IMG/VR virus record: IMGVR_UViG_3300025141_000016
Coordinates: 62,001-126,000 of that record
DNA: 64,000 bases
Reading direction: 5' to 3' (one strand)
The translations under genes were made by a program, and so were the position numbers. Each line of letters opens with the position of its first letter. Position 1 is the first letter of the stretch. Below, one piece after another: positions 42,906 to 59,739 of this stretch. Under the pieces are notes generated by a model that was not told where the DNA came from, ran no database searches, and saw only the letters and a program-made list of their open reading frames with translations.

Positions 42906-43835
42906 ATGCCCACAAAGAAAGAGATTGAGATGGTCCATCTCGTTCAGAGCATCATCGAGAAGCCCGAAATGAGGAGATACCTAAAGAAGCACTACCAAAA
43001 GTCCATCGGGGAGGGGGCACACCCACACACGGGTTTTTGCAGCATGGCTTCGGATGCGCTGCGCCGTATTCTTGGGGGCCAAGTCCGGGGATTCTCGGGC
43101 TACAAACTGTGCCGCGTGGTGCATGAAGGTGAGCCCCACTATTACCTCACCACCCCTTCGGGAGAGGTGCTTGACCCCACGAGTTCCCAGTTCAAGAAAC
43201 GACCTCCTTATGATCGAGGGCGGGGAGTAGGGTTGCCCACCCCCAGTCGCATCCCTGGAACTGATGTTCAATCTCCTACACAGGGGGCGCGGGCAATCAT
43301 GGAGCACCGACGCAGATCCTCATCCTCTGGCCGGTATCCACCCTATCGAGGTCAGGGGGGTAGGAGAAGTATTATGAACCCTGACCGCTCGGCTCTCATC
43401 CGATTGGCCTCGGCGTTACCTGTCGGGAACGCAGACAGGAAGACCATCCTTACGGGGTTGACCTCCAGCCCATTGAGGACACGCCAAGCAGGGCGGGTTC
43501 CTTCCAACGCCCCAAAGCAAGTGAAGCAAGTGGCGAAGGCTTGGGTCCAGAGTGCCATCAAGGCAGGTGAGGAAGTGATCGCAGAGGAAGGGGAAACCGG
43601 GGCCGAGGCCAAGGGCACCCGTGGGTTCTGGAAGGACCGCCTCTATGTGTATGTTGAGGACTCCGACAAGGGTCCGCGCTGGGTCGTGGGGGACAACTAC
43701 GACCGAGCCACGAACATGATCTACTACCCCGATTCTGATGAGTGGTACTCGATGCCCAGCTATGGGTCAGAAAGGCTCATGCGCGGGGGTTTCCAAAACG
43801 CCTTGGGCAGCGCCGAGATCATCTGGACGGGCTGA
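42906..43835 (+). CDS. Papain/transglutaminase-like (Cys-His-Asp) domain joined in frame to a DRSALIRLAS-leader protein
   Basis: GFCSMASDAL...PHYYL...VLDPTSSQF. Internal AGGAG RBS and ATG at 43374 (MNPDRSALIRLAS). Confidence 0.6.
   Translation: MPTKKEIEMVHLVQSIIEKPEMRRYLKKHYQKSIGEGAHPHTGFCSMASDALRRILGGQVRGFSGYKLCRVVHEGEPHYYLTTPSGEVLDPTSSQFKKRPPYDRGRGVGLPTPSRIPGTDVQSPTQGARAIMEHRRRSSSSGRYPPYRGQGGRRSIMNPDRSALIRLASALPVGNADRKTILTGLTSSPLRTRQAGRVPSNAPKQVKQVAKAWVQSAIKAGEEVIAEEGETGAEAKGTRGFWKDRLYVYVEDSDKGPRWVVGDNYDRATNMIYYPDSDEWYSMPSYGSERLMRGGFQNALGSAEIIWTG
43332..43346 (+). promoter_or_regulatory. Class L motif internal to ORF 42906
   Basis: CGGTATccaccCTAT, then AGGAG and ATG 43374. Confidence 0.55.
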
Positions 43836-44166
43836 CCCTCGGGTCATCCGGTCCCAGGCCACGGCACCACTTGGAGTCGGATTGCGCCCACTTGGTCCTG
43901 GCCGTACCTCGCTTACCTTTCTTCAACGCTCGCTCTGCCTTCATCGCGTCGGAGCGTCCCTCATAGGGTCCGTACACGGCACGGATCACCCACGGTCGGT
44001 GCTTGCTGGTGTACTTCCCCCCACCCACGATCTCTCCGTTGTGTTGGCGAAGCCGACGAGCCACGTCGGTCGTACAGCCGACGTAGTGGAACCCAGGCAG
44101 CGGGTGACCCCGTTTGCCGACCCTGCGTTCAAGGGACTGAATGACGTAGACCCAGTATTCGGCCAT
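43819..44166 (-). CDS. GIY-YIG nuclease, SLX1-like
   Basis: WVYVIQS...YVGCTTDVARRLRQHNGEIVGGGKYTSKHRPW...AMKAE; GGAGG RBS. Confidence 0.88.
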   Translation of the reverse strand: MAEYWVYVIQSLERRVGKRGHPLPGFHYVGCTTDVARRLRQHNGEIVGGGKYTSKHRPWVIRAVYGPYEGRSDAMKAERALKKGKRGTARTKWAQSDSKWCRGLGPDDPRVSPSR

Positions 44167-44175
44167 CACTACCTC

Positions 44176-44190
44176 CGGTCGGGAGTCTAT
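44176..44190 (+). promoter_or_regulatory. Class L motif
   Basis: CGGTCGggagtCTAT upstream of 44220. Confidence 0.5.
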
Positions 44191-44219
44191 ACCCCTCCTC
44201 CCCACAGAGGACCGTACCC

Positions 44220-45092
44220 GTGAACCACCCATCCCCCAGCCGTGTGGCCTCCCGCTGGATCAAAGCAGCCCCCGCCGTGGATCTTGATCCACGGAAGGTC
44301 TACTACCACGGGACACCCTCGGAGAAGGCGGGGAAGTCCATCCTCCGCTCTGGCATCGAACCGCCTGACCTTTCGACCCGCAAGGGTCCGCTTCGCCCTG
44401 TGGGCGGCAAGGTGTACCTGACTGACAAACTCTCCTATGGGGTCATCTACGCTCTCGGGGGGGCCGTGGCAGGACACGAGTATCCTGAGCGGCATTGGCA
44501 GGGCAGCGAGTGGGGATACCTGTTCGTGGTGCCGGGGAAGGCTCTCAAAGAAGTCCAGCCCGATGAAGATTCCGTGGGAGAGATGATCTCAAACTCGACT
44601 GGTCCCGGCTGGCTTGATGACTTGGCCGAAGAAATCCTTACGAAGAAACACCCAGCAGAACCCGAGCCTATCGCATTGTCCTATTCGTTCGACTTCGACA
44701 GCGACTTGAATGACAAGGCCAAAGAGCAGTTCTTTTCAGACACGGGGATTGACCCCAGTACGTTCGACTACCACGACGACCGAATCACCCTTGAAGGTTG
44801 GTTTTGGGACGAGGGTTCTTCCTACAACGAGGACTGGTTTTGGGAATATGAGCAAGGGAACCTGTACGACCTCGTGATGGACGGTGACTATGCCGCCTGG
44901 GCTGAAGCCGGAAAGATCCTACTTGGTGAGATGGACTCCGAACAGGAGTTGGAGTTGATCTCATTGGGGGCACACATCGCCCATGAAGGGAAGATCACCC
45001 CGACCGAGTGCTGGAAGATCCACAAGAGCAAGGCACCCCTGTTGAAGAAGAACGGGTCCAACTTCTTTCAGGTTGCGGAGCGGTGCCGATGA
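44220..45092 (+). CDS. ADP-ribosyltransferase-fold protein with N-terminal PSPSRVASRW tag
   Basis: YYHGT...ILRSGI...VYLT...Y.VIYA pattern of H-Y-type ART domains. Confidence 0.6.
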   Translation: MNHPSPSRVASRWIKAAPAVDLDPRKVYYHGTPSEKAGKSILRSGIEPPDLSTRKGPLRPVGGKVYLTDKLSYGVIYALGGAVAGHEYPERHWQGSEWGYLFVVPGKALKEVQPDEDSVGEMISNSTGPGWLDDLAEEILTKKHPAEPEPIALSYSFDFDSDLNDKAKEQFFSDTGIDPSTFDYHDDRITLEGWFWDEGSSYNEDWFWEYEQGNLYDLVMDGDYAAWAEAGKILLGEMDSEQELELISLGAHIAHEGKITPTECWKIHKSKAPLLKKNGSNFFQVAERCR

Positions 45093-45574
45093 CCAAGCCT
45101 TCCCCCAGCCGTGTAGCCTCCCGTTACCGAGAGGCCGCGATCACCTTTCGGGATGAGAGTTCGCCCCGTGTGCAGTACGCCCGACGGTTCTCACTGTGTG
45201 ACTCGGAAGCAGACCCACCCCGCAAGCGTGAGTACCTGTTCACGGATGAGTACCGAACCCACAACCGCAAGACATACAAGCGGTTGAAGAAGCCGGTGCT
45301 GGAGAGCCGTGGGGTCACCGACCCTTGCGACGTTGCCTACATCGACTACGGCGGGGGCGGGAAAGACCTGTATCTTCATCTGGTGATCACGCGAGAAGAC
45401 CACCGAGGGAAAGGGCTCGCCACAAGGCTACTCAAAGAGTTCTACTCCAAGAAGGTGCCCAAGGGAGCGGTTGTGCGCTGGGGTCGCATTATGAACCCAA
45501 CCAGCATGGCTCTGTTTGAGAAGATGAAGAAAGCACGCCCCGATGTGGTTCACATGGGCGGCAAGTTCTACTGA
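45089..45574 (+). CDS. GNAT-family acetyltransferase with N-terminal PSPSRVASRY tag
   Basis: LYLHLVITREDHRGKGLATRLL; NPTSMALFEK. Confidence 0.75.
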   Translation: MTKPSPSRVASRYREAAITFRDESSPRVQYARRFSLCDSEADPPRKREYLFTDEYRTHNRKTYKRLKKPVLESRGVTDPCDVAYIDYGGGGKDLYLHLVITREDHRGKGLATRLLKEFYSKKVPKGAVVRWGRIMNPTSMALFEKMKKARPDVVHMGGKFY

Positions 45575-46488
45575 CTTGCTCGTAGTCGCCATTCCCCTGC
45601 TACCTCGCGGATGAGGCGCAGCATCCTGGCGATGAGGTTGGGGTTGGACTTGGTGAGTCGCGCAATCTCGGACTTCCGGTAGCCCTGGACCATCAGGCCA
45701 ACGCACTCATGGGAGAGGGTGGCGCACATCCCTCGTTCGGTGGCCCGACTCCCGACCATGGTCATCAGCCCATCCGTGAGGGTTTGGAGGTCTGTCTCGT
45801 CTTCCTGGGAGGGGCCGACTATGGCTATGTCTGCACCCGCAACGTCCTCTATTACATCATCGAGCCCTGGGACTCCGAAGACCTCGTTGCGCTCCAGGCG
45901 AGAGTACCGACGACGGTAGTTGGATACGATGCACCCACACACCATGTGGACATAGTGCCCGAAGGAACTCTTGCGGGGGTCAAAAGGGCACTTCCCACCA
46001 TTCCGCACAAGTAGGCCCTTGTAAATCTCTTGCAGCACATCGTCCGGGTCGTAGCCGTACTTGATGACGCGCCGACCGTATCCCGCATAGAACAGTTTTC
46101 GGACCTCGTGTCCCCGCTTCTCCAAGTCAATCCCCAAGGGGGCAACGGGAGCCTCAATGGAGAGGACACGGCTGGTGCGGATCATCGCCTTGGGTTTGAC
46201 AACCGTGAGGTCAGGACGATTCTTGAAAAGCCGGAGGGTGTCAATCGCAGGCTCGGGGGGCCGATAGGTTCCCTGGCGGAAGTAGCGATCAAAAGTGACC
46301 TTGGGATCACGGTGATGAGATCGAGGCTTGGGGTCTTGGTTGACCAACGCCATGATGGTCTGTCGAGCGGAGGGGTATCTCACCGATCCGTTGGGCCACG
46401 AGACGAGAAAACCATTGGTATCGGCCAACACGCGATGACCCCCATGTTCTGTGCGTGCGTAAAAGGTTCCCTCTGTCCTCATCAACAT
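45568..46488 (-). CDS. Phage-encoded sigma-70 ECF-like RNA polymerase sigma factor with N-terminal extension
   Basis: Region 2: DPDDVLQEIYKGLL...FDPRKSSFGHYVHMVCGCIVSNYRRR. Region 4 HTH: GYRKSEIARLTKSNPNLIARMLRLIR. Confidence 0.75.
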   Translation of the reverse strand: MLMRTEGTFYARTEHGGHRVLADTNGFLVSWPNGSVRYPSARQTIMALVNQDPKPRSHHRDPKVTFDRYFRQGTYRPPEPAIDTLRLFKNRPDLTVVKPKAMIRTSRVLSIEAPVAPLGIDLEKRGHEVRKLFYAGYGRRVIKYGYDPDDVLQEIYKGLLVRNGGKCPFDPRKSSFGHYVHMVCGCIVSNYRRRYSRLERNEVFGVPGLDDVIEDVAGADIAIVGPSQEDETDLQTLTDGLMTMVGSRATERGMCATLSHECVGLMVQGYRKSEIARLTKSNPNLIARMLRLIREVAGEWRLRASQ

Positions 46489-46585
46489 ACGATCTTCCTC
46501 CTCATCAGCGTAGATAGTGGTATCACAGTACCGACTTCCAGGGAAACCTTACCCCCTCATACAAGCCCTCAAAGGGGCGATGTGT

Positions 46586-46600
46586 CGATAGTGGTCTTAT
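46586..46600 (+). promoter_or_regulatory. Class L motif
   Basis: CGATAGtggtcTTAT upstream of 46676/47482. Confidence 0.55.
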
Positions 46601-46675
46601 ACCCCTCTGCGGGCAGAGAGGTGCGGACCATGTGCGCGAAATGCAGTAACGTACTGATCGGTTCCTGGCTTCCTG

Positions 46676-47479
46676 TTGGGGTACACCGATATGTATGAGA
46701 AAAACGCCGGAATCAAGGAATGGATGGGGTGGATGGCACAGCCTCTTTCCGTCATCCTGAAAGGGCACAAAGACCTCATCTACGGACCCGTGGATGGCCT
46801 GATGGATGAAGTGATCCGTCAGATCGCTCCCCAGATTGTGAAGGCCATTGGAGAACGAGAGATCGATGAGGACGTGGAGGAGTTTCTGGAAGGTGCCCAG
46901 GAAGGCCGTTTCGATGCCCTTTCAGGCTACCTTGCTGACCCTGACCTCACGGCCCCCGACGATGAACAGGCGGGTTACGACTGGGGGTTTTCTCATGCCG
47001 AGGAATGGAAGGGAAAGACTCTCCCCACCGCTGTCGAGCGAAAGGTGGTGCAGGAGCAGATCAAGGAGTTCCGAAGCCGTGTCACAGAAGAAGTGGTCAT
47101 TGACCTCATGGAAAAGACATGGCACGCCCTATCACCCTCCCACACCATCAAGGCCATCATCAGGGCCGTCAAGAAGCATGGTTGGAAACTCGGTATCGGG
47201 TTTGTGCTCTTTGAGATCGTTGAGCACGCCCTCTTGCCAGCCGTGATGATCAAGCTGACGGGCAACCCCCACTGGGCTATTTTGGGCACCCTCCCCATCG
47301 GTGAGATCATCTACGCCATCGCCATGCGTGTGTTGGGCAGGGCAGACAAGAACTTGGACAAGTTGGACGAGGACGGTCACTTGGATTGGTATGAGGCCAA
47401 GTACGGCCCGGTGAGACTGGCCTCCCAACGTCGCCCTTCGTGTGAGCAAGTCGCATACCGCTACTGCACAGGGAGGTAG
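46676..47479 (+). CDS. Hypothetical protein with hydrophobic hairpin and C-terminal PSCEQVAYRY tag
   Basis: Hydrophobic region LGIGFVLFEIVEHALLPAVMI...; start uncertain (ATG 46691). Confidence 0.65.
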   Translation: MGYTDMYEKNAGIKEWMGWMAQPLSVILKGHKDLIYGPVDGLMDEVIRQIAPQIVKAIGEREIDEDVEEFLEGAQEGRFDALSGYLADPDLTAPDDEQAGYDWGFSHAEEWKGKTLPTAVERKVVQEQIKEFRSRVTEEVVIDLMEKTWHALSPSHTIKAIIRAVKKHGWKLGIGFVLFEIVEHALLPAVMIKLTGNPHWAILGTLPIGEIIYAIAMRVLGRADKNLDKLDEDGHLDWYEAKYGPVRLASQRRPSCEQVAYRYCTGR

Positions 47480-47481
47480 CC

Positions 47482-49344
47482 ATGAGCAGTTGCCCCATTC
47501 GGTCACAGGCATACGGCGGCCTCCCTTCCGTCGGGGGCTTCGGATCCATCATGGAGTTCGGAGTCGGGCTTGGGACCATCTTTGAGGCCGCTCATTGTCT
47601 ACTTGGCTCCCTCGGCAAGAATCTGGGGAGAGAGGATGACTGGGTGGCGATGCTCGGTGTCGAGAAAGGCCATCTGAACGAGGAAGCTGGGATCATCAAG
47701 GACGCCCTCCGTGAGTATGCTCGACCTGTCTACCGCGAGCAGATGCTCGACTTCTCCCAGTACAAGCCCGAGTGGCAGGAGAGGATGCGGGAGTCTGCGG
47801 AGAGGCAGGTCGAGGACATTCAACAGGCTGGACCCAAGTTGGCCTCTCTCGCCAAGGGTAGGGCATCGGCTTTTGTGGAAAATCTGGAAACGGAGGATGC
47901 CCCTGTCGAGTGGGTGAACACCGTTGAGGCCACCTACCTCATGGTGATCGCGTTGGCCGAGGCTGCGGTGAAGGCCGTGAATGACTGGCCCGACTCTATG
48001 GGGAACCCCTTTGCGGACCCCAAGGTGACCCGAGCCGCTGGGCTCATGGAAAAGCATCTCGCGGCTCTGTTCCGATGGGGATCCTCCCAGCGGGTTGCGC
48101 GTCGATACGCTTCCCAGAAGTTCCAGTGGACGCGCTCTCCCCTCTCCTACAACGTGAGCGGGACTGCGAAGCGGCTCGGACTCCTCGACTCGGAAGCAGG
48201 TGACCCCGATGAGTGGGAGACTTACTTCGCGGAAACCCAAAAGGAACTCCGCAAGAAGAACCGCCAGCGGTACAAAAAGCCTCGGTACGAAACAATCCCT
48301 GGTGCGGAACCTGGGACGGTTGCCTTCCTCGACTACCACGAGTTCCCAAACTACTACGGGGACGGGAAACTCTACCTTTACCTCGACTATGTATCGACTC
48401 GGCATGACCGGCTCGGTCAGGGGCACGCTCGGAAGCTGTTTGAGGAGATGCTGCGGAAGCACGGCAAGGACTCCCACTACGATTTCGGACGCATCGCGCA
48501 CAAGGCGGTCTACAAGATTTTCCGCGACTGGCAGTCGCGGGGGATCAACGTCCGGGGAAAGAACTGGGGCGGCTACACCGACGAGGAAGTCGGCCTCCGA
48601 AGCGCCTCTGCCGTCCGGGTCGTTGCTCGCTTTGAAAATCTCCGAAAAACAGACCGGCACACCGTCTACCACGGGACAGGCATCGGCCAACTCCCCCAGT
48701 TGATCAATGGGTTTGATGCAACCAAGATGAAAGGCCGAAGCTACAACACGCGCCCCCACAAAGGGATGTTTGTCTCACCCGACCTTGCCACTGCAAAGAA
48801 GTTCGGTCAGGTGATCCTTGAACTGGAAATCCCCGCCCGTTTCCTGCATGGGCGCGATTGGGCCGGAAAACCCTTACACCCCAAACTACAAGAGGAAGCG
48901 GAAGGGATGTTCCCCGAGTCGTTCCGCCCCGACCTCTCTTACATGCTGGAAGCCGGGGAACCACAGGCATTGGTTCTTGGCCTCGTTTCGCCCAGGCAGA
49001 TCCGCCGCGTGCTTTATGACGGGAAATGGTACTCCCGTAAAGACTTCCTCGCCCTCGACTGGGAAGACCTCAAAACCCCTCGCCGTCGCCCTATGCGCGA
49101 TCTCGGAGTGGATGTTTCTGATCCCAGCCTTTCGTGGGAGGACTTCATAGAAGCCAGCGCAACTCTCTTTGAGTCACCCGTCGCCCGCATCCAAAAAGTG
49201 CTTGGTCGTTGGGTGGAGCAAGGGAAGAACGCCCGCTGGGTGGCGAAGCAGCTTGAAGTGGTGTGGGAACCTCTCACCGCTCGTCGCTATGCCGAACGAT
49301 TCTTCGGGACGCAAGACAGGGAGGCACAGAGGGGGATGCCGTGA
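47482..49344 (+). CDS. Multidomain protein: helical domain plus GNAT plus ART-like domain, separated by RVxxRY/F motifs
   Basis: SSQRVARRYA; LYLDYVSTRHDRLGQGHARKLF (GNAT); ASAVRVVARF; VYHGT...GMFVSPDLATAKKFG..ILELEI (ART). Confidence 0.7.
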   Translation: MSSCPIRSQAYGGLPSVGGFGSIMEFGVGLGTIFEAAHCLLGSLGKNLGREDDWVAMLGVEKGHLNEEAGIIKDALREYARPVYREQMLDFSQYKPEWQERMRESAERQVEDIQQAGPKLASLAKGRASAFVENLETEDAPVEWVNTVEATYLMVIALAEAAVKAVNDWPDSMGNPFADPKVTRAAGLMEKHLAALFRWGSSQRVARRYASQKFQWTRSPLSYNVSGTAKRLGLLDSEAGDPDEWETYFAETQKELRKKNRQRYKKPRYETIPGAEPGTVAFLDYHEFPNYYGDGKLYLYLDYVSTRHDRLGQGHARKLFEEMLRKHGKDSHYDFGRIAHKAVYKIFRDWQSRGINVRGKNWGGYTDEEVGLRSASAVRVVARFENLRKTDRHTVYHGTGIGQLPQLINGFDATKMKGRSYNTRPHKGMFVSPDLATAKKFGQVILELEIPARFLHGRDWAGKPLHPKLQEEAEGMFPESFRPDLSYMLEAGEPQALVLGLVSPRQIRRVLYDGKWYSRKDFLALDWEDLKTPRRRPMRDLGVDVSDPSLSWEDFIEASATLFESPVARIQKVLGRWVEQGKNARWVAKQLEVVWEPLTARRYAERFFGTQDREAQRGMP

Positions 49345-49446
49345 ACTGGGTGGCGGCCAACTTCAATCAGTACCGGAAGTTTCTGACCTGCTGACTCACC
49401 GGGCGGAACCTAACCTCCCAATAAAAAGGTAGGTTTTTCTTCTGGA

Positions 49447-49481
49447 GGGGGGTTCAACTCGGGCCGGTATCTCCGTATAGG
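49447..49481 (+). promoter_or_regulatory. Class E promoter
   Basis: GGGGGGTTCAACTCGGGCCGGTATCTCCGTATAGG. Confidence 0.8.
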
Positions 49482-49553
49482 CGTGAACCGTAGGGTGACC
49501 TACGCTCTTTACTCACCCCTTCCATGCTCCATTGAGGAGCCCCGGAGATCGTC

Positions 49554-49766
49554 ATGGGCCGCAAAATCCGCCGTCAACGTGCCAAGGGCAAACGGGCTGA
49601 CCGTATCCACGCCAGCATCAAGGCCCAGCGTGGGCTCGACAGGGCTGAACACTTCGCCAAGGGTGGCGATCTCGTTCAGTATTGGGGTGGACCCAAGACG
49701 GTGACGCGAAACCGCAAGCGGGATGCGTCCCGTAATGCGTGTCGCGTCACCGTGAAGGACTACTAA
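49554..49766 (+). CDS. Small basic hypothetical protein
   Basis: GGAGA RBS; R/K-rich, 70 aa. Confidence 0.65.
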   Translation: MGRKIRRQRAKGKRADRIHASIKAQRGLDRAEHFAKGGDLVQYWGGPKTVTRNRKRDASRNACRVTVKDY

Positions 49767-49780
49767 CCCCGGAGTCTTCT

Positions 49781-50167
49781 ATGTCCCCCACCACCGAAAT
49801 CAGTATCGCCTTCCTTCGCCGCATCTATGCCAAGGGAAGTCTCTCGATAACCGAGGCGGTGACCGCTTTTGATGACCGGTGGGGTGCCCTCCCCGAAGGG
49901 GGTGGCACCCTCAACTACCATCTCCAGTTCTCGCTGGCTCACTACCTGGGGGAACTGCCTTCCTACTCGCACCTGTCCCCCACAGTCCTCGTCGCTGCCC
50001 CCACCACGGACAAGCAACGCGAGGTGTTGAAGGTGTGGGAGGAAGGCACCGATGGCGGCAACCTCCCTGCCGACTTCGATTGGACCACCTACGAGTCTAT
50101 CCCTTACCGCTTCGCTCCAGGCTGGCGGCGACGGTACAAGACGATTGAGCCCTGTCCTTCCTGCTGA
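49781..50167 (+). CDS. Hypothetical protein
   Basis: ATG 49781 after GGAG. Confidence 0.6.
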   Translation: MSPTTEISIAFLRRIYAKGSLSITEAVTAFDDRWGALPEGGGTLNYHLQFSLAHYLGELPSYSHLSPTVLVAAPTTDKQREVLKVWEEGTDGGNLPADFDWTTYESIPYRFAPGWRRRYKTIEPCPSC

Positions 50168-50211
50168 CCTTTTGACCCCCGGACTCGCACCGAGCGAGCA
50201 TGGAGAGTTTC

Positions 50212-50718
50212 GTGGATACCAACGTCCTTCGCGGTGCGAAAATCCTTGCCATTGAGGGCATGGCCCCTTCCTCGGAAACCGTCACCCTTACGACCGACCG
50301 AGGGGTGCTGCGTCTGCACCACCATCAGGATTGCTGTGAATCCGTGGCGGTGGAAGACGTGACCGGTGACCCTGCCGACTTGATCGGTGCGATCATCCGT
50401 GACTTCCGCGAAGACACCAAGGACCACCCTGACACCAGTGAGTCCTGGGTCCAGATGTGGACGTTCTACAACATCGTGACGGACAAGGCTGATGCCCAGA
50501 TCCGTTGGTGCGGGGCCAGCAACGGCTACTACAGCATCTCTGTGAGCATGGAGTGGGAGACTACCCTTCCCCCCATCTCCAAGTGCCTGCCGCCCCCCTT
50601 CGCCGGGATCCGCAGGATTGACGAAGACGGCACCGCCCGGAACTACCAGGGCGACGTGCTCGTCACCCTCCCCCCAGAGTCGGTGAACAACATCCTCTCT
50701 GCCTATGACCTCTCGTGA
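50212..50718 (+). CDS. Conserved-type phage protein (HHQDCCE...SNGYYS) with shared C-terminal LPxPF domain
   Basis: HHQDCCESVAVED, WTFY, RWCGASNGYYS. GTG 50212 follows GGAG (alternative ATG 50200). Confidence 0.7.
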   Translation: MDTNVLRGAKILAIEGMAPSSETVTLTTDRGVLRLHHHQDCCESVAVEDVTGDPADLIGAIIRDFREDTKDHPDTSESWVQMWTFYNIVTDKADAQIRWCGASNGYYSISVSMEWETTLPPISKCLPPPFAGIRRIDEDGTARNYQGDVLVTLPPESVNNILSAYDLS

Positions 50719-51977: not shown

Positions 51978-52469
51978 ATGACCTACCGAAATGTCGAGTA
52001 TCCCGAGGCTGTTGCCGCAGCTAATGAGGGACTTCCCTTCACGATTTGCTGGGAGTTCTCTGGTGCCAATGGCAAGAACAAATCCGGCACGTCCGACAAG
52101 TTCTGGCTGATTGAGCGCACCTGCAAAAACGGTGAGGTGTACCGACGGTTCGGCAAGAAAGGAGCCAACGGCCAGCGTCAACTGATTCCGAGTGTCGCGA
52201 GCGGGCTGCTCCAAGGTCGGGGAAAGGAAAAAAAGGGGTACGTCCTCTCCTTCGCTTCCGTTGTCGCTCCCGCTGGGCAGTCCGACCACCCCGACCCGAG
52301 GGTAAGGCCCCTGATCTCCAAGATGCTCCCTGCCCCTTTCTGCCACATCCGCATGGTCCATGAGGCACCGATTGGGACATGGAACGCCTATGACAGCGAA
52401 GGGAACGTCGTGGTCACCCTGGCTGCGGACACGGCAGCAGAAATCATCGCAACCTACACGCTGGCATAG
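51978..52469 (+). CDS. WGR-like domain protein with shared C-terminal LPxPF domain
   Basis: SDKFWLI...VYRRFGKKGANGQ...KEKKGY; AAGGAG RBS. Confidence 0.7.
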   Translation: MTYRNVEYPEAVAAANEGLPFTICWEFSGANGKNKSGTSDKFWLIERTCKNGEVYRRFGKKGANGQRQLIPSVASGLLQGRGKEKKGYVLSFASVVAPAGQSDHPDPRVRPLISKMLPAPFCHIRMVHEAPIGTWNAYDSEGNVVVTLAADTAAEIIATYTLA

Positions 52470-52477
52470 GAGCAAGC

Positions 52478-54526
52478 ATGTCCAAGAATCTCGACACCCT
52501 TGCTCTGGCCCAGCGTCTTCGTGAAGCCTCCGCTGCCTACTACAGCGGGGGCAAGCCCTCTATGTCCGATGCCGAGTTCGATGCACTGGAAGCCGACCTC
52601 CGCAAGCGTGACCCCAAGCATCCTGCGCTCGCAGAGGTGGGTGCGCCTCCGTCCTCCGGCTGGCCCAAGGTCACCCATCCCATCACCATGGGATCGCTGG
52701 CGAAGGTTCAGAACAATGCCGAGTTGGACTCCTGGGTCACCCCTCTTGTCCGCAACAGCAGAATCGGGGGATGGAACTCTAATGGGTCCAAACTCCGCGA
52801 AGGGAACCAGGGCTGGTGCGTCACCGAGAAGATGGACGGGATTTCCGTTCTCCTGACATACACGGACGGTGTTCTTGTCCGAGCCGCCACCCGTGGTGAC
52901 GGAACCACGGGGGAAGACATTACGCGCAACGTGCGAGTAATGAAGGGTGTCCCGGCCACGCTGCCAACGCTCCCTCGTGGGGACGTTCATATCCGTGGCG
53001 AGATCATCTGCAAGAAGTCCGACTTTCTCCGAGAGTTCGCGGCAGATGGGTACAGCAACCCCCGCAACACGGCTTCGGGAACCTCCAAGCGTCATAGCGG
53101 ATGGCAGAAGTGCCGCCACCTGACGGTCTACGCCTACAACCTGTTCGGAGCCGGTGTCCCTGCCGATGCCGACAAGCGCACTTCGGAGATGATTACCCTG
53201 GCGAAATGGGGGTTCAATGTCCCCTGGACCGAGGCGACCGCGTTTGAGGGAGGTGGGGGAACCACCTCGACCGACCGTATCCAGGCTTTCCACGACCTCT
53301 ACACCAGCGGTAAGCGTGAGTCGCGAGACTACGAGATAGACGGTCTGGTGGTGGAGGTGAACGACACGGCTTCCCGCGAATCCCTTGGCACGACCCCAGA
53401 TGGTATGCGTCCGAAAGGCGCAGTGGCGTACAAGTTCCCGCATGAAGCCCAGCAGACCACCCTGCGAAACATTCGTTGGCAGGTCGGCACGACGGGTCGC
53501 GTGACCCCTGTGGCCGAGTTCGATGCTGTGGACCTTGCGGGCGCGTCGGTCAAACAGGCCAGCCTCCACAACCTCGCCAACATCGAGAAGTTGACTAACG
53601 GTGCTGGGTTCATGGAGAACGCCACCATCCTCGTATCTCGGCGCAACGACGTAATCCCTTATGTCGAGGCGTTGCTGTCCCAGCATCCCCAGGAAGATGA
53701 GTTTGAGGCACCCCACGACTGCCCCGAGTGTGGGTTCGACTTGGCGATGGACGGGGAATACCTCGTCTGCGGTAACGGAGGCGACGGCCCAGGTGATCTG
53801 GGGTGCCCCGCACAAATCCTTGGTGGTATCCGACGCTGGATCAAGAAGATCGGTGTGCTCCACTTCGGGGACCGGCTCATTGAAGCGGTTGTCGAGGCAG
53901 GGATGGTCAAGACCATCCCCGACCTTTATCGGCTGGACGAACAAGCGATGGCTGCGCTTTCGCTCAACGGTCGTCGTGTCGGTGGGGCTGCAAAGCGGGC
54001 TCTGGGTTCACTTCATGCTCACAAGACCCTCCCCCTCGATACCTTCGTGGGATCGTTGGGCATCCCGTTGTGTGGTCGCCGCATGGTGGGGATGCTCATG
54101 GATGCTGGTATCTGTGACCTCAACATGCTGTCCGAGGCTACCGAGGCCCAACTGGCTCTCGCCCCTGGATTCGGCGTGGACAAGGCCAGGGCATTCCGGG
54201 TCGGGTTCGATGAGTGCAGGGACACCATCATTGGCCTGTACGCCGTCGGAGTCACCGTGGCTCCCCCCCAGCCCAAGACCGCTACCTCGGGGGTCCTCTC
54301 CGGTGTGTCCGTCTGCATGACAGGCTTCCGTGACAAGTCCATGGAGAACGCCATCAGTGCTGCCGGGGGGACTGTGAAGTCCAGCGTCAGCAAGGCTCTC
54401 GGATTGTTGGTCGCCAAAGACCCCAACAGCACGTCGGGGAAGGCGAAGAAAGCGCGGTCCCACGGCATCGAGGTCATTGACCCAGCCGAGATGTGGACAC
54501 GCCTGGGGGGTCAGGCCCAGCCTTGA
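52478..54526 (+). CDS. ligA: NAD+-dependent DNA ligase
   Basis: AYY...SDAEFD, EKMDG, TRGDGTTGEDIT, RGE, NPRN, DGLVV, AVAYKF, CPEC...C...C Zn finger, HhH, BRCT (VCMTG). Confidence 0.96.
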   Translation: MSKNLDTLALAQRLREASAAYYSGGKPSMSDAEFDALEADLRKRDPKHPALAEVGAPPSSGWPKVTHPITMGSLAKVQNNAELDSWVTPLVRNSRIGGWNSNGSKLREGNQGWCVTEKMDGISVLLTYTDGVLVRAATRGDGTTGEDITRNVRVMKGVPATLPTLPRGDVHIRGEIICKKSDFLREFAADGYSNPRNTASGTSKRHSGWQKCRHLTVYAYNLFGAGVPADADKRTSEMITLAKWGFNVPWTEATAFEGGGGTTSTDRIQAFHDLYTSGKRESRDYEIDGLVVEVNDTASRESLGTTPDGMRPKGAVAYKFPHEAQQTTLRNIRWQVGTTGRVTPVAEFDAVDLAGASVKQASLHNLANIEKLTNGAGFMENATILVSRRNDVIPYVEALLSQHPQEDEFEAPHDCPECGFDLAMDGEYLVCGNGGDGPGDLGCPAQILGGIRRWIKKIGVLHFGDRLIEAVVEAGMVKTIPDLYRLDEQAMAALSLNGRRVGGAAKRALGSLHAHKTLPLDTFVGSLGIPLCGRRMVGMLMDAGICDLNMLSEATEAQLALAPGFGVDKARAFRVGFDECRDTIIGLYAVGVTVAPPQPKTATSGVLSGVSVCMTGFRDKSMENAISAAGGTVKSSVSKALGLLVAKDPNSTSGKAKKARSHGIEVIDPAEMWTRLGGQAQP

Positions 54527-54556
54527 TCTCCGTAACTGCCCACATAGGAGGCAATC

Positions 54557-54847
54557 ATGTTGACATTCGCACGGGGTGACCCGTACACGGTGACGTTAGC
54601 CGTCACGAAATGCGGGATCCGAATGGAGAGCCCCGCCGTCCTACCCGGCGCAAAACTGACAGCCGAGGAAAGGGCCACGTTGCTCGACCATGGCTGGAAG
54701 ATGCACGAGGGGTTGTACTACCACCCCAACGGTGTGCGGAGCGGCTACTTCCACCGGCTGAAAGCACGTTCCAAGGCAGCAGCCAAGGCCCGTGAGGCCG
54801 AGGCCACCGAGGTTGAGGGCACCCCTCCCGAGGAAGATGGGTCATAA
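54557..54847 (+). CDS. Hypothetical protein
   Basis: AGGAGG RBS. Confidence 0.6.
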   Translation: MLTFARGDPYTVTLAVTKCGIRMESPAVLPGAKLTAEERATLLDHGWKMHEGLYYHPNGVRSGYFHRLKARSKAAAKAREAEATEVEGTPPEEDGS

Positions 54848-54857
54848 AAAGGCCCAG

Positions 54858-54891
54858 GGGGGGTTCAACTCCCCCACCTATCTCCGTATAG
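54858..54891 (+). promoter_or_regulatory. Class E promoter
   Basis: GGGGGGTTCAACTCCCCCACCTATCTCCGTATAG. Confidence 0.8.
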
Positions 54892-54940
54892 AACCGCATC
54901 CTTTTCCCTGTGCCCGACTGACGGGCCAACTGGAGAAACC

Positions 54941-55309
54941 ATGACCCGAGAAACCACCATCATCGAGCGCGGGACCGCTGCTCGTCGTCTCGTGGAGTCT
55001 GTCGATGAGCGTCGGCGTGAACGCGCCAACCGCATCGACGTGATCAACGCCACCGAGCGAGGGGACCGCCTCATCGCTACCGTCCGGTCGGAAGACAAGG
55101 CGAAGACCTACAACACCGTGATCTCCCTCGACGTGAGGGGACGGCGAGGTTGGGTGCGCTGTGACTGTGATGACAACCACCGACGGAACTTGCCCTGCAA
55201 GCACTCTGTTGCTGTTGCCAACCGCTACCGCGCTACGAAGCGCGAGGAACTTCTACGGCTCCGGGGGGATGCCGCCACCCAGGACACTCCAACCCCGGAA
55301 AAACCATGA
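54941..55309 (+). CDS. SWIM zinc-finger protein
   Basis: VRSE...YNTVI...CDCDD...PCKHSVAV. Confidence 0.8.
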   Translation: MTRETTIIERGTAARRLVESVDERRRERANRIDVINATERGDRLIATVRSEDKAKTYNTVISLDVRGRRGWVRCDCDDNHRRNLPCKHSVAVANRYRATKREELLRLRGDAATQDTPTPEKP

Positions 55310-55593
55310 TCCTCCAACGAGAATGGCTGTTGGCCCGCTTCGACTTCTACCGTTGCCCCAACAGCGAACGCATCTCGGCCTGTGTCAAAGACAGCACCGA
55401 TGACAAGCTGATGTGTGGCTGTGGGCAAGTCAACCCCATCGTCAAGGAAAGAGGCTACAGCGAGCCAATAACCAGTGGAATAGTCCACCATTGGGTGCGT
55501 GATCTCTCTCCTGCATCCGTAGACGAGTTCATGGTCTGGAGGGAGAAATGGGTCCAACTCATCAAATCCCGCCGTGGTGGGGGTGTGCGATGA
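55306..55593 (+). CDS. Hypothetical Cys-containing protein
   Basis: ATGA coupling; CGCG. Confidence 0.6.
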   Translation: MILQREWLLARFDFYRCPNSERISACVKDSTDDKLMCGCGQVNPIVKERGYSEPITSGIVHHWVRDLSPASVDEFMVWREKWVQLIKSRRGGGVR

Positions 55594-55883
55594 GAATGCT
55601 CCTACAACAAGCCCCTCGGATTCGCCTCGCCATTCTCTGCGAGGTGTGCGGGGAGGATGCTCCCAGCCTGAACGGGCTGGTGGAGGAAGACCAAGACGGC
55701 GCTCTCACGGCGAGGGCTTGGAAAGCCGAGAACGACGCTACCGAGATCGAATACCTCGTCTGGTTGGTCGCCAACGGTCATTGTCCTGCTTGCCACGGCA
55801 AGCGGTGGGGAGGCCAAACCCCCGATGACGTGATCACCAAATGGATGGCCCACTACAAACGGACCCGCACGGAGGGCATCTGA
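55590..55883 (+). CDS. Hypothetical zinc-ribbon protein
   Basis: CEVC...CPAC; ATGA coupling. Confidence 0.6.
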   Translation: MRMLLQQAPRIRLAILCEVCGEDAPSLNGLVEEDQDGALTARAWKAENDATEIEYLVWLVANGHCPACHGKRWGGQTPDDVITKWMAHYKRTRTEGI

Positions 55884-55908
55884 CCTTTTTCACCTCTCCC
55901 GATAAGGG

Positions 55909-55938
55909 AGGGGGGTCAACTCCTGGCTCGGTCGAGTA
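55909..55938 (+). promoter_or_regulatory. Class E variant promoter (GTCAAC-N14-AGTA) upstream of the ncRNA candidate
   Basis: GGGGGGTCAACTCCTGGCTCGGTCGAGTA; same variant geometry as 18964. Confidence 0.55.
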
Positions 55939-55944
55939 AGGGGG

Positions 55945-56695
55945 GCCAAGAGTTCTTTTACATCTCAAACGAATCTCAACACGCCTTTCGGGGCGTGGCA
56001 GAGTGAACCCTTGCTGACGGGTTCCCAAACCGATGTACCCTTGCCGGGTCGTTGGCTCCCTCGGGAGATAGGCAGAACCCCGATTGGGAAGGTGGCCTTC
56101 ACAGGTCATGCCGCCCAATCTGTGAGGGGGGACGAGTTATGCGGTGTGGAAACCGCGAGAACCGTCCAGTGTCCCGGCGCATGAGCCGACGTTCCACCGT
56201 CGGAGTGCTGCAAAGGGAAGTCCCGTACTTGTCGGTTCAACGGGACAACGGTTGCAGGGCACAAACCATGACGAAAGTCTTGGGAAGGGGGTCGTTCCCC
56301 AGAATCGGACTGCTGAATGCAGAAGCCTCTCTGGTCATCGGGGCAACTTGGTGGCCGTCCCGAAAGGGGGCAACTGGCGATCTTCCCAAGGGATCAAAGG
56401 TTGTCGTGTGAAGGGTTGGGGAAGGTACACTCCACAACCCGGAGCGCAGAATGTAGGCAGCAGTATCGCGTGCTGTTCCGTCGTAGGAGACTGCGAAGAA
56501 CAGGGAGGAACGCTGTGAACCGTTTTACTTACGGGTGTTCACACTCCTAACCCGAGAGGGGACAGGCTCAAAAGGCTTGGAGGTCACGGCATGGGAGCAG
56601 GCCGATGTGCTGCTTGTTTGTTCCCTTATGAGGGGGTCATCCGAAAGGGTGGCCCCCTCCCCCTTTCACAGTCGCCCGAGAGGGCGACTTTTTTT
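55945..56695 (+). ncRNA. Large structured non-coding RNA candidate (~750 nt)
   Basis: No credible CDS. More than 15 hairpins, with GAAA/GCAA/GAGA/UUCG tetraloops and many G-U pairs. Bounded by a promoter motif and an intrinsic terminator. Confidence 0.75.
56670..56695 (+). terminator. Intrinsic terminator
   Basis: AGTCGCCC-GAGA-GGGCGACT followed by a T tract. Confidence 0.88.
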
Positions 56696-56702
56696 CGTCC
56701 AG

Positions 56703-56737
56703 GGGGGGTTCAACTCGCCCCGGTATCTCCGTATAAG
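56703..56737 (+). promoter_or_regulatory. Class E promoter
   Basis: GGGGGGTTCAACTCGCCCCGGTATCTCCGTATAAG. Confidence 0.8.
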
Positions 56738-56757
56738 CGCGGAGGCATTGGATACAC

Positions 56758-57528
56758 ATGACCCGAACAATAATCATTGGCGACGTTCACGGAATGTTGC
56801 CCGAACTGGAAAGCCTCTTGGGGCGACTCCAACCTACGACGGACGACGAGGTTGTCTTTGTCGGTGACCTCGTGGACAAAGGCCCCGATAGCGTTGGGGT
56901 GGTCCGGCGAGTGCGCGAACTGGCCGACACGGTGCCTGTGGTGCTCGTAGAGGGCAACCACGAGGACAAGCACCGACGGTTCCGTAAGAACCTGACCGTG
57001 CGGCCCGAAGTGGCTGCGGGTCAAGCCGAGCGGCAACCTGAACTGGCTACCATCACGGAAGGCTTGTCCGAAGAAGACGTGGCTTTCCTCGACGGTGCGG
57101 TCATGTTCCACCGAGTCCCCGACCATGGGGTGCTCGTGGTTCACGGTGGCATCCCTGGCGATATGGTCGAGTTCCCAGCCACCCCCGAGGAAGCCGCTGC
57201 GTTGACAGGCAAGGCCAAGAGAGCACTGTCCAAGACCCTGCGGACACGCTACCTTTCGGGAGAGACTGGCAAGTTTCTCCAGTTGGGCAAAGAGGGACCG
57301 GAAGACCCGTTCTGGGCCGGGGTCTGGGATGGGCGGTTCGGGCACGTTGTCTTCGGGCACGAGCCTTTCCTGGCTGGTCCCGCATTGTTCCCCCACGCTA
57401 CTGGTGTGGATACGGGAGCGGTGTTCGGTGGATCGTTGACGGCCTTGGTCATTGACGATGCGGGTGAGCGGTCCTTCGTGTCCGTCCCCAGCCGTCCAAT
57501 GGCTCCTTTCCGCTTCATGCTGACATAG
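56758..57528 (+). CDS. Calcineurin-like metallophosphoesterase (ApaH/PrpE/Pnkp-phosphatase-like)
   Basis: IGDVHG, VGDLVDKGP, GNHE, VHGG, VFGH, GVDTGAVFGGSLTA. Confidence 0.92.
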   Translation: MTRTIIIGDVHGMLPELESLLGRLQPTTDDEVVFVGDLVDKGPDSVGVVRRVRELADTVPVVLVEGNHEDKHRRFRKNLTVRPEVAAGQAERQPELATITEGLSEEDVAFLDGAVMFHRVPDHGVLVVHGGIPGDMVEFPATPEEAAALTGKAKRALSKTLRTRYLSGETGKFLQLGKEGPEDPFWAGVWDGRFGHVVFGHEPFLAGPALFPHATGVDTGAVFGGSLTALVIDDAGERSFVSVPSRPMAPFRFMLT

Positions 57529-57544
57529 AGGGTCACTGACCCCC

Positions 57545-57572
57545 AGCCCTCCCTCCGGGGAGGGCTTTTGTT
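57545..57572 (+). terminator. Intrinsic terminator
   Basis: AGCCCTCCC-TCCG-GGGAGGGCT then TTTGTT. Confidence 0.7.
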
Positions 57573-57575
57573 GTA

Positions 57576-57971
57576 TCAACCCCAAAAACCCCGCTCCTCC
57601 AGCACATCGAACCAATGCGGTTCGGGCTGGGGGGGCGGGGTTTTTCTCGTTTGGGCTCCCGGTTTCCACCAGTCAGGGTCATCCAAGTTCGTGATGAGGT
57701 CGTAAAGTTCGACCGGGAGTTCCGCCAGGGCTCCTTCCTCAAACCATTCACCATCGTTGCGAGTGCCCCGATGGCGCATGGCACGGTGAATGCCGTGTTC
57801 CCGGTGACCCTGGTCGGGAGCGTGCAGGATCAGACGGAAGCGATGGGGGCACGCGGTCTGTAGTTGCTTCAATCTTCGGTGAACATCCTTTGACCTTCCC
57901 ACCTTCACAGCGCCCGTAGTGTCCATCTGAATGATATAGAGGTCTTGGCCTCGATTTAGGATTTGGGACAC
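57576..57971 (-). CDS. T5orf172/MUG113-type GIY-YIG domain protein
   Basis: LYIIQ...VKVGRSKDVHRRLKQLQTACP...EHGIH...GEWF; GTG start after GAGGA. Confidence 0.82.
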   Translation of the reverse strand: MSQILNRGQDLYIIQMDTTGAVKVGRSKDVHRRLKQLQTACPHRFRLILHAPDQGHREHGIHRAMRHRGTRNDGEWFEEGALAELPVELYDLITNLDDPDWWKPGAQTRKTPPPQPEPHWFDVLEERGFWG

Positions 57972-58006
57972 AGGTTCCTCGATACCGGGGTGGGCGCATC
58001 TGGGGT

Positions 58007-58021
58007 CGGTGGCTTCGCTAT
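58007..58021 (+). promoter_or_regulatory. Class L motif
   Basis: CGGTGGcttcgCTAT upstream of 58054. Confidence 0.5.
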
Positions 58022-58053
58022 ACCCCTTCACCAGTGATTAGGAGATTGTCCCG

Positions 58054-58356
58054 ATGACCGAAAGTAGCCCCGATGGATGGCACAGAGCACTGACCTGGGG
58101 GAAGGACGTTCTTGTTATTCTCGTCTTCCCTGTGCTCATCTGGACCGTCAAGCTGGAGATCGGGAACGCGGAGCGGGACATGCTTATCGCCCAATCGGAT
58201 GCGGAAATCTCACGGTTAGAGGAACGCATAGGCGAGATGAAGGACATTGATGACCGAGTTCAAGAGAACGCCCTCCAGTTAGCCCGCTTGGAAGGCAAGC
58301 TGGACACTGCAAATGGGAGATTGGATGAAATCCGCAACTTGCTTCTCGACAGGTAA
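58054..58356 (+). CDS. Single-pass membrane coiled-coil protein
   Basis: TM segment VLVILVFPVLIW followed by heptad repeats. Confidence 0.7.
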   Translation: MTESSPDGWHRALTWGKDVLVILVFPVLIWTVKLEIGNAERDMLIAQSDAEISRLEERIGEMKDIDDRVQENALQLARLEGKLDTANGRLDEIRNLLLDR

Positions 58357-58609
58357 GGTATGCGCTGCGTGCCTTGTGGTCGTCACCATCCTGACTGCGA
58401 CCAACTTCTACAAGTTGTGGGTGTGCCATGCGCCAGCGGCAGCGAACGCCACCGAGCCTGTGCCTGAACCACCGCAGGAAGTTGACCCCACACAGCAGTT
58501 AGACCGGAAGATGGACCAACAGACTCAACTCCTGTTGGAGATTCATCAAGACATGGATGAGGTCAACTCCAACCTCAACGAGATTCAAGTCATCCTCAAA
58601 GATGAGTGA
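58313..58609 (+). CDS. Single-pass membrane coiled-coil protein
   Basis: Hydrophobic CAACLVVVTILTA, Pro linker, coiled coil; start uncertain. Confidence 0.55.
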   Translation: MGDWMKSATCFSTGKVCAACLVVVTILTATNFYKLWVCHAPAAANATEPVPEPPQEVDPTQQLDRKMDQQTQLLLEIHQDMDEVNSNLNEIQVILKDE

Positions 58610-58639
58610 CCGGGTACGGTGTGACTCGGAGGCATAATC

Positions 58640-58957
58640 ATGCAAACCCCTACGACCGAAGCAACCCCCACGAACCCCACTCCCACCACCGAAAACGGTA
58701 GTGAGAATGGATCTTACGGCGAACTCGCACCAGAAGTGCTCAACGCTGTGACCCAACTCCGTGCCCGTAGCGAGGCCCTTGTGGCCGAGGTCGGTAGGAT
58801 GGAGATCCACAAGGCCGCTCTCACCCGTGAGGCTGTCGAGATCAACCAAAAGGCGCAGAGTCTTCTCCAACAGGAAGCCCAGCGTCTCGGAATCCCCAAC
58901 GGAACCTCGTGGCGGCTCACCCCCGAGGGAACCGCGATGGCTGTCGAGGACCGGTAG
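58640..58957 (+). CDS. Hypothetical coiled-coil protein
   Basis: GGAGG RBS. Confidence 0.65.
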   Translation: MQTPTTEATPTNPTPTTENGSENGSYGELAPEVLNAVTQLRARSEALVAEVGRMEIHKAALTREAVEINQKAQSLLQQEAQRLGIPNGTSWRLTPEGTAMAVEDR

Positions 58958-58966
58958 GCTGACTAT
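58952..58966 (+). promoter_or_regulatory. Class L motif
   Basis: CGGTAGgctgaCTAT upstream of 59011. Confidence 0.6.
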
Positions 58967-59010
58967 CGCTCCACAGGGGTATCAAGACCCTTCGTCGGGG
59001 AGGACCAGCT

Positions 59011-59739
59011 ATGTCCCGCACCTTTACTGCCGCTGACCGTTCTGCTCTCATCCGCCTTGCTTCCACACTCCCCGTGGGAAGCAAGGAACGGAAGGCTATC
59101 CTCCGTGGGTTGGTCAAGGTCGAGGCCAAGACTGCCAAGACCGCCATGGCCTTCAAGCTCCCCCATTTCCCCATCAAGGGAAAGGGGGACAAGGTGGTGG
59201 TGATGAAGCCTTTTGAGGCTGGGACGGAACCCTACGCGGGGGGGATGGTGCAAGGCCGTAAGATCAAAATGCGTCCCGGCAGCGTTCCAAACGGGTTCGT
59301 CATCGACATGATCAAGGGCTACAAGTCGAACCCATCATCTGCCATGATGGACCAACTCGGTCCCGCTGCGTGGCAGAACGATGAGCCTGACCAGTACCTT
59401 ATCAACTTCGGCGGCATGAAGGTTTACGTCACCGAAGATGACTGGAGAGACAAGAAAGTCATGGCTGTGCCGCCTCCGAAGGAATGGAGCACAAGCCTGC
59501 TCAAAGCATCCCAAGATGATCTCATGGAAGTCTTACGGGAGGAGATGGGGGTAGCTAATGACTACTCCTCCCGCACCCTGTGGCTTCACAACCCCAAAGA
59601 GGTCGCGAAAAAGTGGGATGAAGCCCACGGGCGGGGAGCATGGGGCAAGTTGTTGGTGGACAACCTCGTTCGCCAGTTGGGCGGTGAGTTTGAGGCCGAC
59701 GTTATGAAGTTCATTCGGGAAGAAGCCCGGAGCATGTAA
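59011..59739 (+). CDS. Hypothetical protein with DRSALIRLAS leader
   Basis: MSRTFTAADRSALIRLASTLPVGSKERKAILRGL...KTAKTA. Confidence 0.7.
   Translation: MSRTFTAADRSALIRLASTLPVGSKERKAILRGLVKVEAKTAKTAMAFKLPHFPIKGKGDKVVVMKPFEAGTEPYAGGMVQGRKIKMRPGSVPNGFVIDMIKGYKSNPSSAMMDQLGPAAWQNDEPDQYLINFGGMKVYVTEDDWRDKKVMAVPPPKEWSTSLLKASQDDLMEVLREEMGVANDYSSRTLWLHNPKEVAKKWDEAHGRGAWGKLLVDNLVRQLGGEFEADVMKFIREEARSM

Follow-up and report, generated by a model that had tools for sequence, protein, structure and literature searches.

The DNA considered here, called the window below, is a stretch of 64,000 nucleotides (bases 62,001-126,000) from a 297,104-bp viral contig with 59.5% G+C (IMG/VR record IMGVR_UViG_3300025141_000016), which is classed as linear and is rated 67% complete by CheckV. 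It carries two genes, A and B, whose products begin with related copies of a short peptide, the LIRLA tag, and continue into bodies between which BLASTP finds no relation; as the original prediction of a shared leader peptide had claimed, the two proteins are not full-length homologs. Positions with the prefix g are those of the whole contig, all others are those of the window, and the features described in this part lie on the plus strand.

Gene A (43374-43835, 153 amino acids) encodes the tag, a linker and a body without assigned function, whereas in gene B (59011-59739, protein P0002, 242 amino acids) the tag is followed by a disordered linker and a beta-rich plus helical body. Both peptides occur in the form originally given, MNPDRSALIRLASALPVGNADRKTILTGL from 43374 and MSRTFTAADRSALIRLASTLPVGSKERKAILRGL from 59011. 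A profile made from the genome's own copies matches gene A at 43371-43466 (E 4.3e-17) and gene B at 59023-59121 (E 3.4e-19), and the two tags are therefore far beyond chance. The so-called class L motif said to precede each peptide was also found, as GGTATCCACCCTATC at 43333-43347, 27 nucleotides upstream of the start codon of gene A, and as GGTAGGCTGACTATC at 58953-58967, 44 nucleotides upstream of the ATG at 59011. Between element and start codon, Shine-Dalgarno-like stretches can be read from the sequence in both cases, namely AGGAG at 43362-43366, 7 nucleotides before the ATG at 43374, and GGGGAGG at 58997-59003.

A point absent from the original prediction is that the ATG at 43374 sits within a longer open frame (42906-43835, 309 amino acids), the upstream part of which (42906-43373) encodes a separate YunG/phrog_12251-like domain. 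This domain matches phrog_12251 over residues 25-112 (E 4e-6) and Pfam YunG with an E-value of 0.0033, which is below the curated cut-off. No stop codon interrupts the YunG-like frame, which thus stays open and in phase across the class L element and the ribosome-binding site into gene A. The orthologues of gene A are 63-87% identical; among them P0165 is tagged and P0164, with a body 87% identical, is not. Gene B has three orthologues, 58-59% identical and all tagged, two of which continue without a stop codon into a second tag and a second body. The same stop-less tandem layout is found at g197240-198244 and g266923-268161 and in P0162 and P0163 (tagged pairs and orthologues), and such genes may give both a fused and a short product.

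Sequence, position and fold of the LIRLA tag

The tag has the consensus (K/R)-T-L-T-A-S-D-R-x-A-L-I-R-L-A-S-x-L-P-x-G-S-x-E-R-K-A-I-L-A-G-L-x-K-x-A, about 35 residues. The conserved unit thus exceeds the motif first described, starting at (K/R)-T-L-T-A-S-D-R and ending at G-L-x-K-x-A, and these flanks are also conserved around internal copies. By the profile of its own copies, the source contig holds 24 copies, 22 of them strong and two decayed (g190463 and g221997); in one of the decayed copies the motif is lost after 17 residues and the other is stopped after 18. Because of these two, an ongoing birth and death of tagged genes is suggested. The profile search that the original prediction had put forward was also extended to 1.84 billion representative proteins, where 1,745 clusters match at E<=1e-3 and 659 at E<=1e-10. 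Without exception, the carriers examined are unnamed metagenomic 'hypothetical' proteins, and the inspected contigs are phage-like and of large size. Pfam gave no match for P0002 or the tag, even at E<=1, and neither PHROGs nor the PDB sequences gave one for the tag itself; in the ESM Atlas its neighbours are unnamed clusters of 37-39 amino acids, with no named cluster among them. Full-text searches of the searchable literature, both for the motif itself and for N-terminal motifs shared among huge-phage proteins, returned nothing relevant.

The position of the tag was counted in the best 150 of the 1,745 clusters, a sample in which the top-scoring carriers favour multi-copy proteins. These 150 carriers hold 241 copies, of which 128 are N-terminal (starting within the first 15 residues), 33 are C-terminal (ending within 10 residues of the C-terminus) and 80 are internal; two or three copies per protein occur in 78 carriers, and 69 of the 113 copies that are not N-terminal have no Met within 12 residues upstream. 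Nearly all lower-ranked single-copy carriers have the tag at the N-terminus, and in most single-copy carriers it begins 3-6 residues past the start Met. On the source contig, internal copies are found at g249840, g286880 and g222290 and a C-terminal copy at g172949, while P0031 consists of little beyond two tags. The description as a leader peptide is thus borne out to the extent that N-terminal copies are common, but with 113 of 241 copies elsewhere a strict leader is not supported, and a copy at the C-terminus cannot act as a leader. Judging from these sequences, LIRLA is best described as a module rather than strictly a leader.

The helical hairpin that had been claimed is recovered by AlphaFold2. 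With a 149-sequence alignment as input, the isolated tag is predicted as a helix at residues 7-18, a loop at 19-24 (T-L-P-x-G-S) and a second helix at 25-45, with a mean predicted local distance difference test (pLDDT) score of 85. In the model of full-length P0002 the hairpin (helices 7-19 and 25-46) reaches a pLDDT of 96-97, residues 46-52 fall below 50, and the beta-rich plus helical body follows. Since a confident hairpin is followed by a low-confidence linker, LIRLA is modelled as an independent unit on a flexible tether. A Foldseek search of the PDB with full-length P0002 gave nothing significant, the body showing weak SH3/Tudor-like matches.

Codon usage was compared over 210 pairs of LIRLA copies within the source contig. 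The pairs are on average 54% identical in amino acids; identity is 64% at codon positions 1 and 2 and just 35% at position 3, and 62% of the residues that are identical between copies use different codons. Because third positions are free while residues are conserved, the comparison points to selection at the level of the peptide, and the divergence at third positions therefore rules out a recently spread DNA cassette. After the tag, GL-x-K-x-A is a weak family feature (K in 53-55% and A in 31-39%), similar after N-terminal and internal copies. The 'basic-x-A segment' originally noted after each peptide is thus part of a weak family pattern, which looks like the end of helix 2 and is not a demonstrated cleavage site.

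Cargo proteins, upstream DNA and related phages

The bodies of 19 carrier open reading frames on the source contig are mutually unrelated in an all-against-all BLASTP comparison, which agrees with the original view of a tag common to otherwise unrelated proteins. They are also mostly not conserved in the nearest large relative, G001, where the tag alone matches. Pfam and PHROGs searches with the two window proteins and 10 other carriers gave solely the YunG-like match of the upstream frame and an L5 gp82-like match. One ADP-ribosyltransferase-like protein belongs to the LIRLA set, and four carriers match the Fusellovirus VP2 family. Two side observations concern particular carriers. In a subfamily of long carriers, including P0007 (g266923-268161), P0006, P0009, P0011, P0034, P0039 and others, a cysteine motif G-C-E-K-L-P-x-G-P-M-R-D-N-C-E-K-K directly follows LIRLA, and a C-terminal LIRLA copy is present too. 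In addition, the tagged gene g4734-5834 (L001), located directly after the portal gene, is preceded by an in-frame (Ser-Arg)n run encoded by a GGTCGA repeat.

The class L element, with the consensus cGGTAG-N6-CTATc, has 46 matches in the genome, compared with 9-24 in shuffled sequences. It precedes 9 of the 18 starts of N-terminally tagged LIRLA genes and 20 of the 268 other starts (Fisher p 8.5e-6), about 25-60 nucleotides before the start codon. The element or a close variant also precedes genes of the baseplate region and the operon holding the capsid protein gene. As its halves GGTAG and CTATC are nearly complementary, with one G-U pair, it may not be a simple promoter but an RNA hairpin or a site bound by a dimer. 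Upstream of three neighbouring paralogues, g196643, g197240 and g197831, the DNA is nearly identical (CCCTATCGGACCCGTAGGGTCAGGAG). Further class L sites of the window lie at 9965, 26898, 37154, 42152 and 59749, in addition to about 40 other sites in the genome.

The head module of the source contig includes the large terminase (g122-2047), the portal (g2986-4704), a head-maturation protease (g19549-21045, phrog_18299), a very acidic, scaffold-like repeat protein (g21055-22431; L002:3055-4431), which occupies the usual scaffold position between the protease and capsid genes, and an HK97-family major capsid protein (MCP; P0169, 290 amino acids). The MCP is 84% identical to that of LR745208.1, a 485-kb uncultured phage, 50% to that of Tunturiibacter phage Tunturi_5, 41% to gp27 of Bacillus phage G and about 30% to those of cluster C mycobacteriophages; relatives are encoded in at least 587 IMG/VR contigs, the best 80 being 86-94% identical. 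On the basis of these MCP identities to LR745208.1, Tunturi_5, phage G and the IMG/VR contigs, the phage belongs to a large clade of uncultivated huge phages akin to phage G. The window itself encodes a family A DNA polymerase, an NAD-dependent ligase, a baseplate J-like protein and a beta-helix protein. Five large, probably structural proteins (window 1-2053, window 8632-9798, g6097, g41689 and g52779) have in common a stretch of about 55 residues that closes with A-I-N-D-x-A-N-x-F.

Some features of the head proteins can be noted separately. The MCP (g23342-24226) is 88-89% identical across genomes of 38%, 45% and 60% G+C, while in the same genomes the portal, terminase, protease and scaffold-like proteins are merely 39-76% identical, so conservation of the shell is unusually strong. 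The scaffold-like protein contains 29% Asp+Glu and three KGKKARALRAKALRMLRLADEEEASDEE repeats; its C-terminal 45 residues are kept in G003 and G004 and its middle is not.

LIRLA is unevenly distributed among the relatives, whose gene models are simple longest-open-reading-frame calls. Next to the 24 copies of the source contig, G001 (MCP 88% identical) has 11, and the fragments G006, G007 and G008 (15-46% complete, MCP 92-94%) have 6, 9 and 7. None is found in the 45-kb fragment G009 (MCP 93%), in G002, G003, G004 and G005 (MCP 88-89%), of which G003 and G004 are rated 100% complete, in LR745208.1, or in Tunturi_5 and phage G. Across these genomes, the tag is lineage-specific and confined to the closest relatives. 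Other tags were sought by self-comparison of each genome for short segments common to otherwise unrelated proteins. The approach recovered LIRLA in the source contig and G001, as a positive control, and revealed a different N-terminal helix in 30 proteins of G004 and in 11 plus 5 proteins of G003. The profile of this RIARLE tag (consensus MRRSASEIIRNLEMRIARLERQA) matches 31 proteins in G004, 24 in G003 and 12 in G005, and none in the source contig, G001, G002, LR745208.1, Tunturi_5 or phage G. RIARLE consists of one amphipathic helix, about 22 residues long, with a heptad pattern typical of short coiled coils, and a start Met adjoins it in 53 of the 55 copies of G003 and G004. Among the genomes examined, LIRLA and RIARLE are mutually exclusive.

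Both tags start with M-x-R-x-L/S-T/A-A-S-D/E. Homology between them was considered on this account and rejected (hhalign probability 0.3%), and the two are therefore treated as analogous only. Their cargo provides a link of another kind. A 251-amino-acid RIARLE protein of G003 (L131:11226-11978) matches P0007 (E 1e-18) from the region after the second LIRLA copy up to the C-terminus, and three shorter matches link other pairs. Since a sister phage has homologous cargo with a different tag, and since an orthologue of gene A 87% identical in its body lacks the tag, LIRLA behaves as a swappable tag. Most of the cargo under either tag consists of ORFans; pentapeptide-repeat proteins are present on both sides, and the RIARLE set also has a JmjC/cupin protein and a WGR protein.

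As regards RIARLE itself, G003 (L116-L131) has two subtypes, and the G004 carriers are found at L132-L150. Translated DNA just upstream of RIARLE genes is conserved as well (e.g., LTLNGE and PNGE), which suggests that these genes, too, share an upstream element. The best sub-threshold RIARLE match in the source contig, MLEQRVARMERI, lies in the scaffold-like protein (10.2 bits, rank 1 of 282); the observation is post hoc and non-significant. LIRLA had originally been described as parallel to a further peptide, the RVAxRY tag. This motif, usually [S/A]-[A/S]-R-V-A-x-R-Y-A, has 15 sites on the source contig (e.g., window 27752, 45110, 48091 and 63295), mostly inside large open reading frames and not at N-termini, three of them in a 1519-amino-acid frame (g190585-195144). 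Its RVAR core is similar to the core of RIARLE, R-[VI]-A-R-L-E, although the RIARLE profile does not detect it. The parallel is only loosely supported, and the profile-profile test of LIRLA with RIARLE gave no homology.

A possible address tag and its alternatives

A tag that is modular, joined by a linker, expanded within a lineage and replaceable on unrelated proteins of fast turnover behaves as an address or docking tag would. It can be hypothesized, tentatively and with somewhat less than even confidence, that LIRLA is read by a shared partner and that the interior of the procapsid is the most likely destination. The flexible linker would join the tag to many unrelated, fast-evolving accessory proteins of one huge-phage lineage; a basic face (R6, R11, R23 and K/R24) together with a small hydrophobic face would bind one common phage-encoded partner; and any protein tagged at either end, or several times, would be brought to the same place. 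This place would be the interior of the assembling procapsid, either the scaffold core or the capsid shell, from where the cargo would be packaged and delivered with the DNA, as by the capsid-targeting sequence of phage T4. Of the packaging signal or propeptide originally proposed, packaging or docking thus remains the best reading, while a cleaved propeptide is unsupported.

The procapsid is favoured as a destination because of the best structural match, the contrast of a basic tag with an extremely acidic scaffold-like protein, and the class L element before structural genes and the capsid operon. In an exhaustive comparison of the tag model with 48,161 PDB representatives, the top match was the helix-turn-helix of gp24, the putative scaffolding protein of phage Pa193 (9b40; Z 6.3, root-mean-square deviation 1.8 Å), which covers 41 of 41 residues at 20% identity and was again first in a repeat comparison (Z 6.0; range of deviations 1.8-2.2). 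Two fusions of the phi29 scaffold gp7 are also among the matches (Z 5.5 and 5.0). In the capsid, the gp24 hairpin is attached to the inner side of the five-fold vertices and has been likened to the coat-binding domain of P22 gp8 (PMC11456595). The similarity should be taken as a lead given by a model and not as proof.

Several results weigh against a procapsid address. Unrelated alpha-hairpins reach Z 5.0-5.6 in the same lists, so that the 9b40 match lies within hairpin noise, and Foldseek searches of the PDB and BFVD with the tag model gave nothing significant (best E 1.7). The MCP is 88-89% identical in genomes that have a different tag or none; the shell is therefore unlikely to be the partner that confers specificity. 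If the capsid is the target, a fast-evolving scaffold would more likely read the tag than the shell, given a near-identical MCP and scaffolds only 39-55% identical over parts, but the scaffold-like protein (g21055-22431) has no LIRLA match of its own. Internal, C-terminal and tandem copies would suit a general binding module equally well, and 24-31 tagged proteins per genome are a lot for packaged cargo. The tag is absent from Tunturi_5 and phage G, and no cultured phage among 50,697 GenBank phage records has it. The tagged gene beside the portal gene was considered as evidence for a role in the head and rejected, the insertion being absent from the same position in G001. A complex prediction for MCP and LIRLA gave 'no answer' (score 0.00, no controls) and is evidence neither way.

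A wider version of the proposal is more doubtful. In it, the whole clade would use an addressing system of lineage-specific, interchangeable tags such as LIRLA and RIARLE, carried by up to about 10% of the genes and co-evolving with a receptor, e.g., the fast-evolving, acidic scaffold core, through which a large and quickly changing arsenal of effectors would be loaded into the giant capsid for co-injection. It is rather unlikely, for its part, that the tag docks to a hub outside the capsid or self-associates, gathering proteins into a complex, a condensate or a factory for replication or takeover. Such a role would fit a module found at any position and in two or three copies per protein, as well as P0031, which is almost two tags alone; a hairpin of two helices on its own commonly relies on a partner to cover its hydrophobic face, the tag differs between lineages whose capsid protein is near-identical, and the heptad pattern of RIARLE is typical of short coiled coils. 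Against it, no result favours the cell over the head as the location of the proteins, and no candidate hub stands out. Phyletic nomination of a receptor was tried and given up, since 49 genes are shared only with the tag-bearing G001, too many to pick one.

That the tag tethers proteins to phage or host DNA as a small nucleic-acid-binding motif, a helix-extended-loop-helix of the SAP/HeH/Rho-N kind, is unlikely. Its length, helix-loop-helix layout, invariant Gly-Ser loop and four conserved basic residues are compatible with such a motif, as are the Lys/Glu-rich linkers of some multi-copy carriers (P0003) and the four carriers that match the family of Fusellovirus VP2, a DNA-binding virion protein. 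The VP2 matches may, however, reflect low-complexity Lys-rich linkers; the tag has no Pfam match at E<=1 and no PDB sequence relative, the Rho_N (PF07498) and HeH (PF12949) profiles find nothing in the source contig, and no HeH or SAP domain is among the structural matches. The version first proposed, in which an N-terminal propeptide is cut after K/R-x-A during maturation, must be regarded as quite improbable. It would account for the many single-copy carriers with the tag close behind the start Met and for the weak GL-x-K-x-A pattern, the contig encodes a head-maturation protease, and the T4 targeting sequence, removed by the prohead protease, offers a precedent. Removal at this site is nevertheless unsupported, as nearly half of the copies counted are internal or C-terminal, mostly with no nearby Met, and K-x-A follows internal copies equally and lies inside helix 2 in the AlphaFold model. 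The least credible explanation, with next to no weight, is that a DNA cassette of promoter, ribosome-binding site and 5' end was spread by recombination and that the peptide is functionless. The near-identical upstream DNA of g196643, g197240 and g197831 and the association of the tag with the class L element would suit this explanation. Against it, the residues are conserved while third codon positions are close to random, conservation of the peptide extends over 1,745 clusters and from genome to genome, and internal and C-terminal copies have no promoter context.

Huge phages have hundreds of genes without assigned function, and the sorting of the products is poorly understood. A portable tag on 20-30 unrelated proteins per genome, and in more than 1,700 clusters, would define a functional class of proteins that go to the same place or meet the same partner. 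Should the cargo go to the capsid, the effectors injected by an abundant, global, uncultivated clade could be recognised from sequence alone; the two tags on the same cargo would be a natural case of address-tag turnover, and LIRLA could serve as a handle for loading foreign proteins into very large phage capsids. If the destination lies elsewhere, the tag would point to an undescribed hub in huge-phage infection.

Comparison with known systems

RIARLE is the comparison closest at hand. It is found in the same clade (MCP 88-89% identical), on 12-31 unrelated small proteins per genome and on one homologous cargo, but it is a single helix of about 22 residues, almost always N-terminal (53/55) and with no detectable homology to LIRLA. 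Encapsulin cargo-loading peptides are short, usually C-terminal, extended sequences of about 10 residues that address unrelated enzymes into an HK97-fold shell. By analogy, LIRLA may likewise be a terminal peptide addressing unrelated cargo to the interior of such a shell, although it is predicted as a helical hairpin and the shell would be a phage capsid.

The coat-binding helix-turn-helix of scaffolding proteins (the C-terminus of P22 gp8, residues 286-326 of Pa193 gp24, and phi29 gp7) is similar in its length of about 40 residues and its charged contacts. LIRLA differs in being found on roughly 20 non-scaffold proteins and not on the phage's own acidic scaffold-like protein. The turn of Pa193 gp24 is moreover acidic, in contrast to the basic LIRLA, and the match is not above the hairpin background.

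The closest functional precedent, by analogy, is the T4 capsid-targeting sequence, a peptide of about 10 residues that is strictly N-terminal and is removed by the prohead protease. In the T4 proteins that bear it (IPI-III and Alt), as in the LIRLA proteins, a conserved peptide is the sole element common to diverse, fast-evolving proteins, the tag is transferable between cargos, and the genes are located in variable parts of the genome. LIRLA has no sequence similarity to this peptide. At about 35 residues and with its predicted hairpin fold it is also of another size and form, it is found at internal and C-terminal positions and in tandem as well, and its targeting to the capsid is a proposal. 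The T4 internal proteins are highly diverse defence proteins that share only the targeting sequence, which brings them into the scaffolding core, and most of them act against the host (PMC3012670). If the wider proposal is correct, the addressing system of the whole clade would be a broader, diversified counterpart to the targeting sequence of T4.

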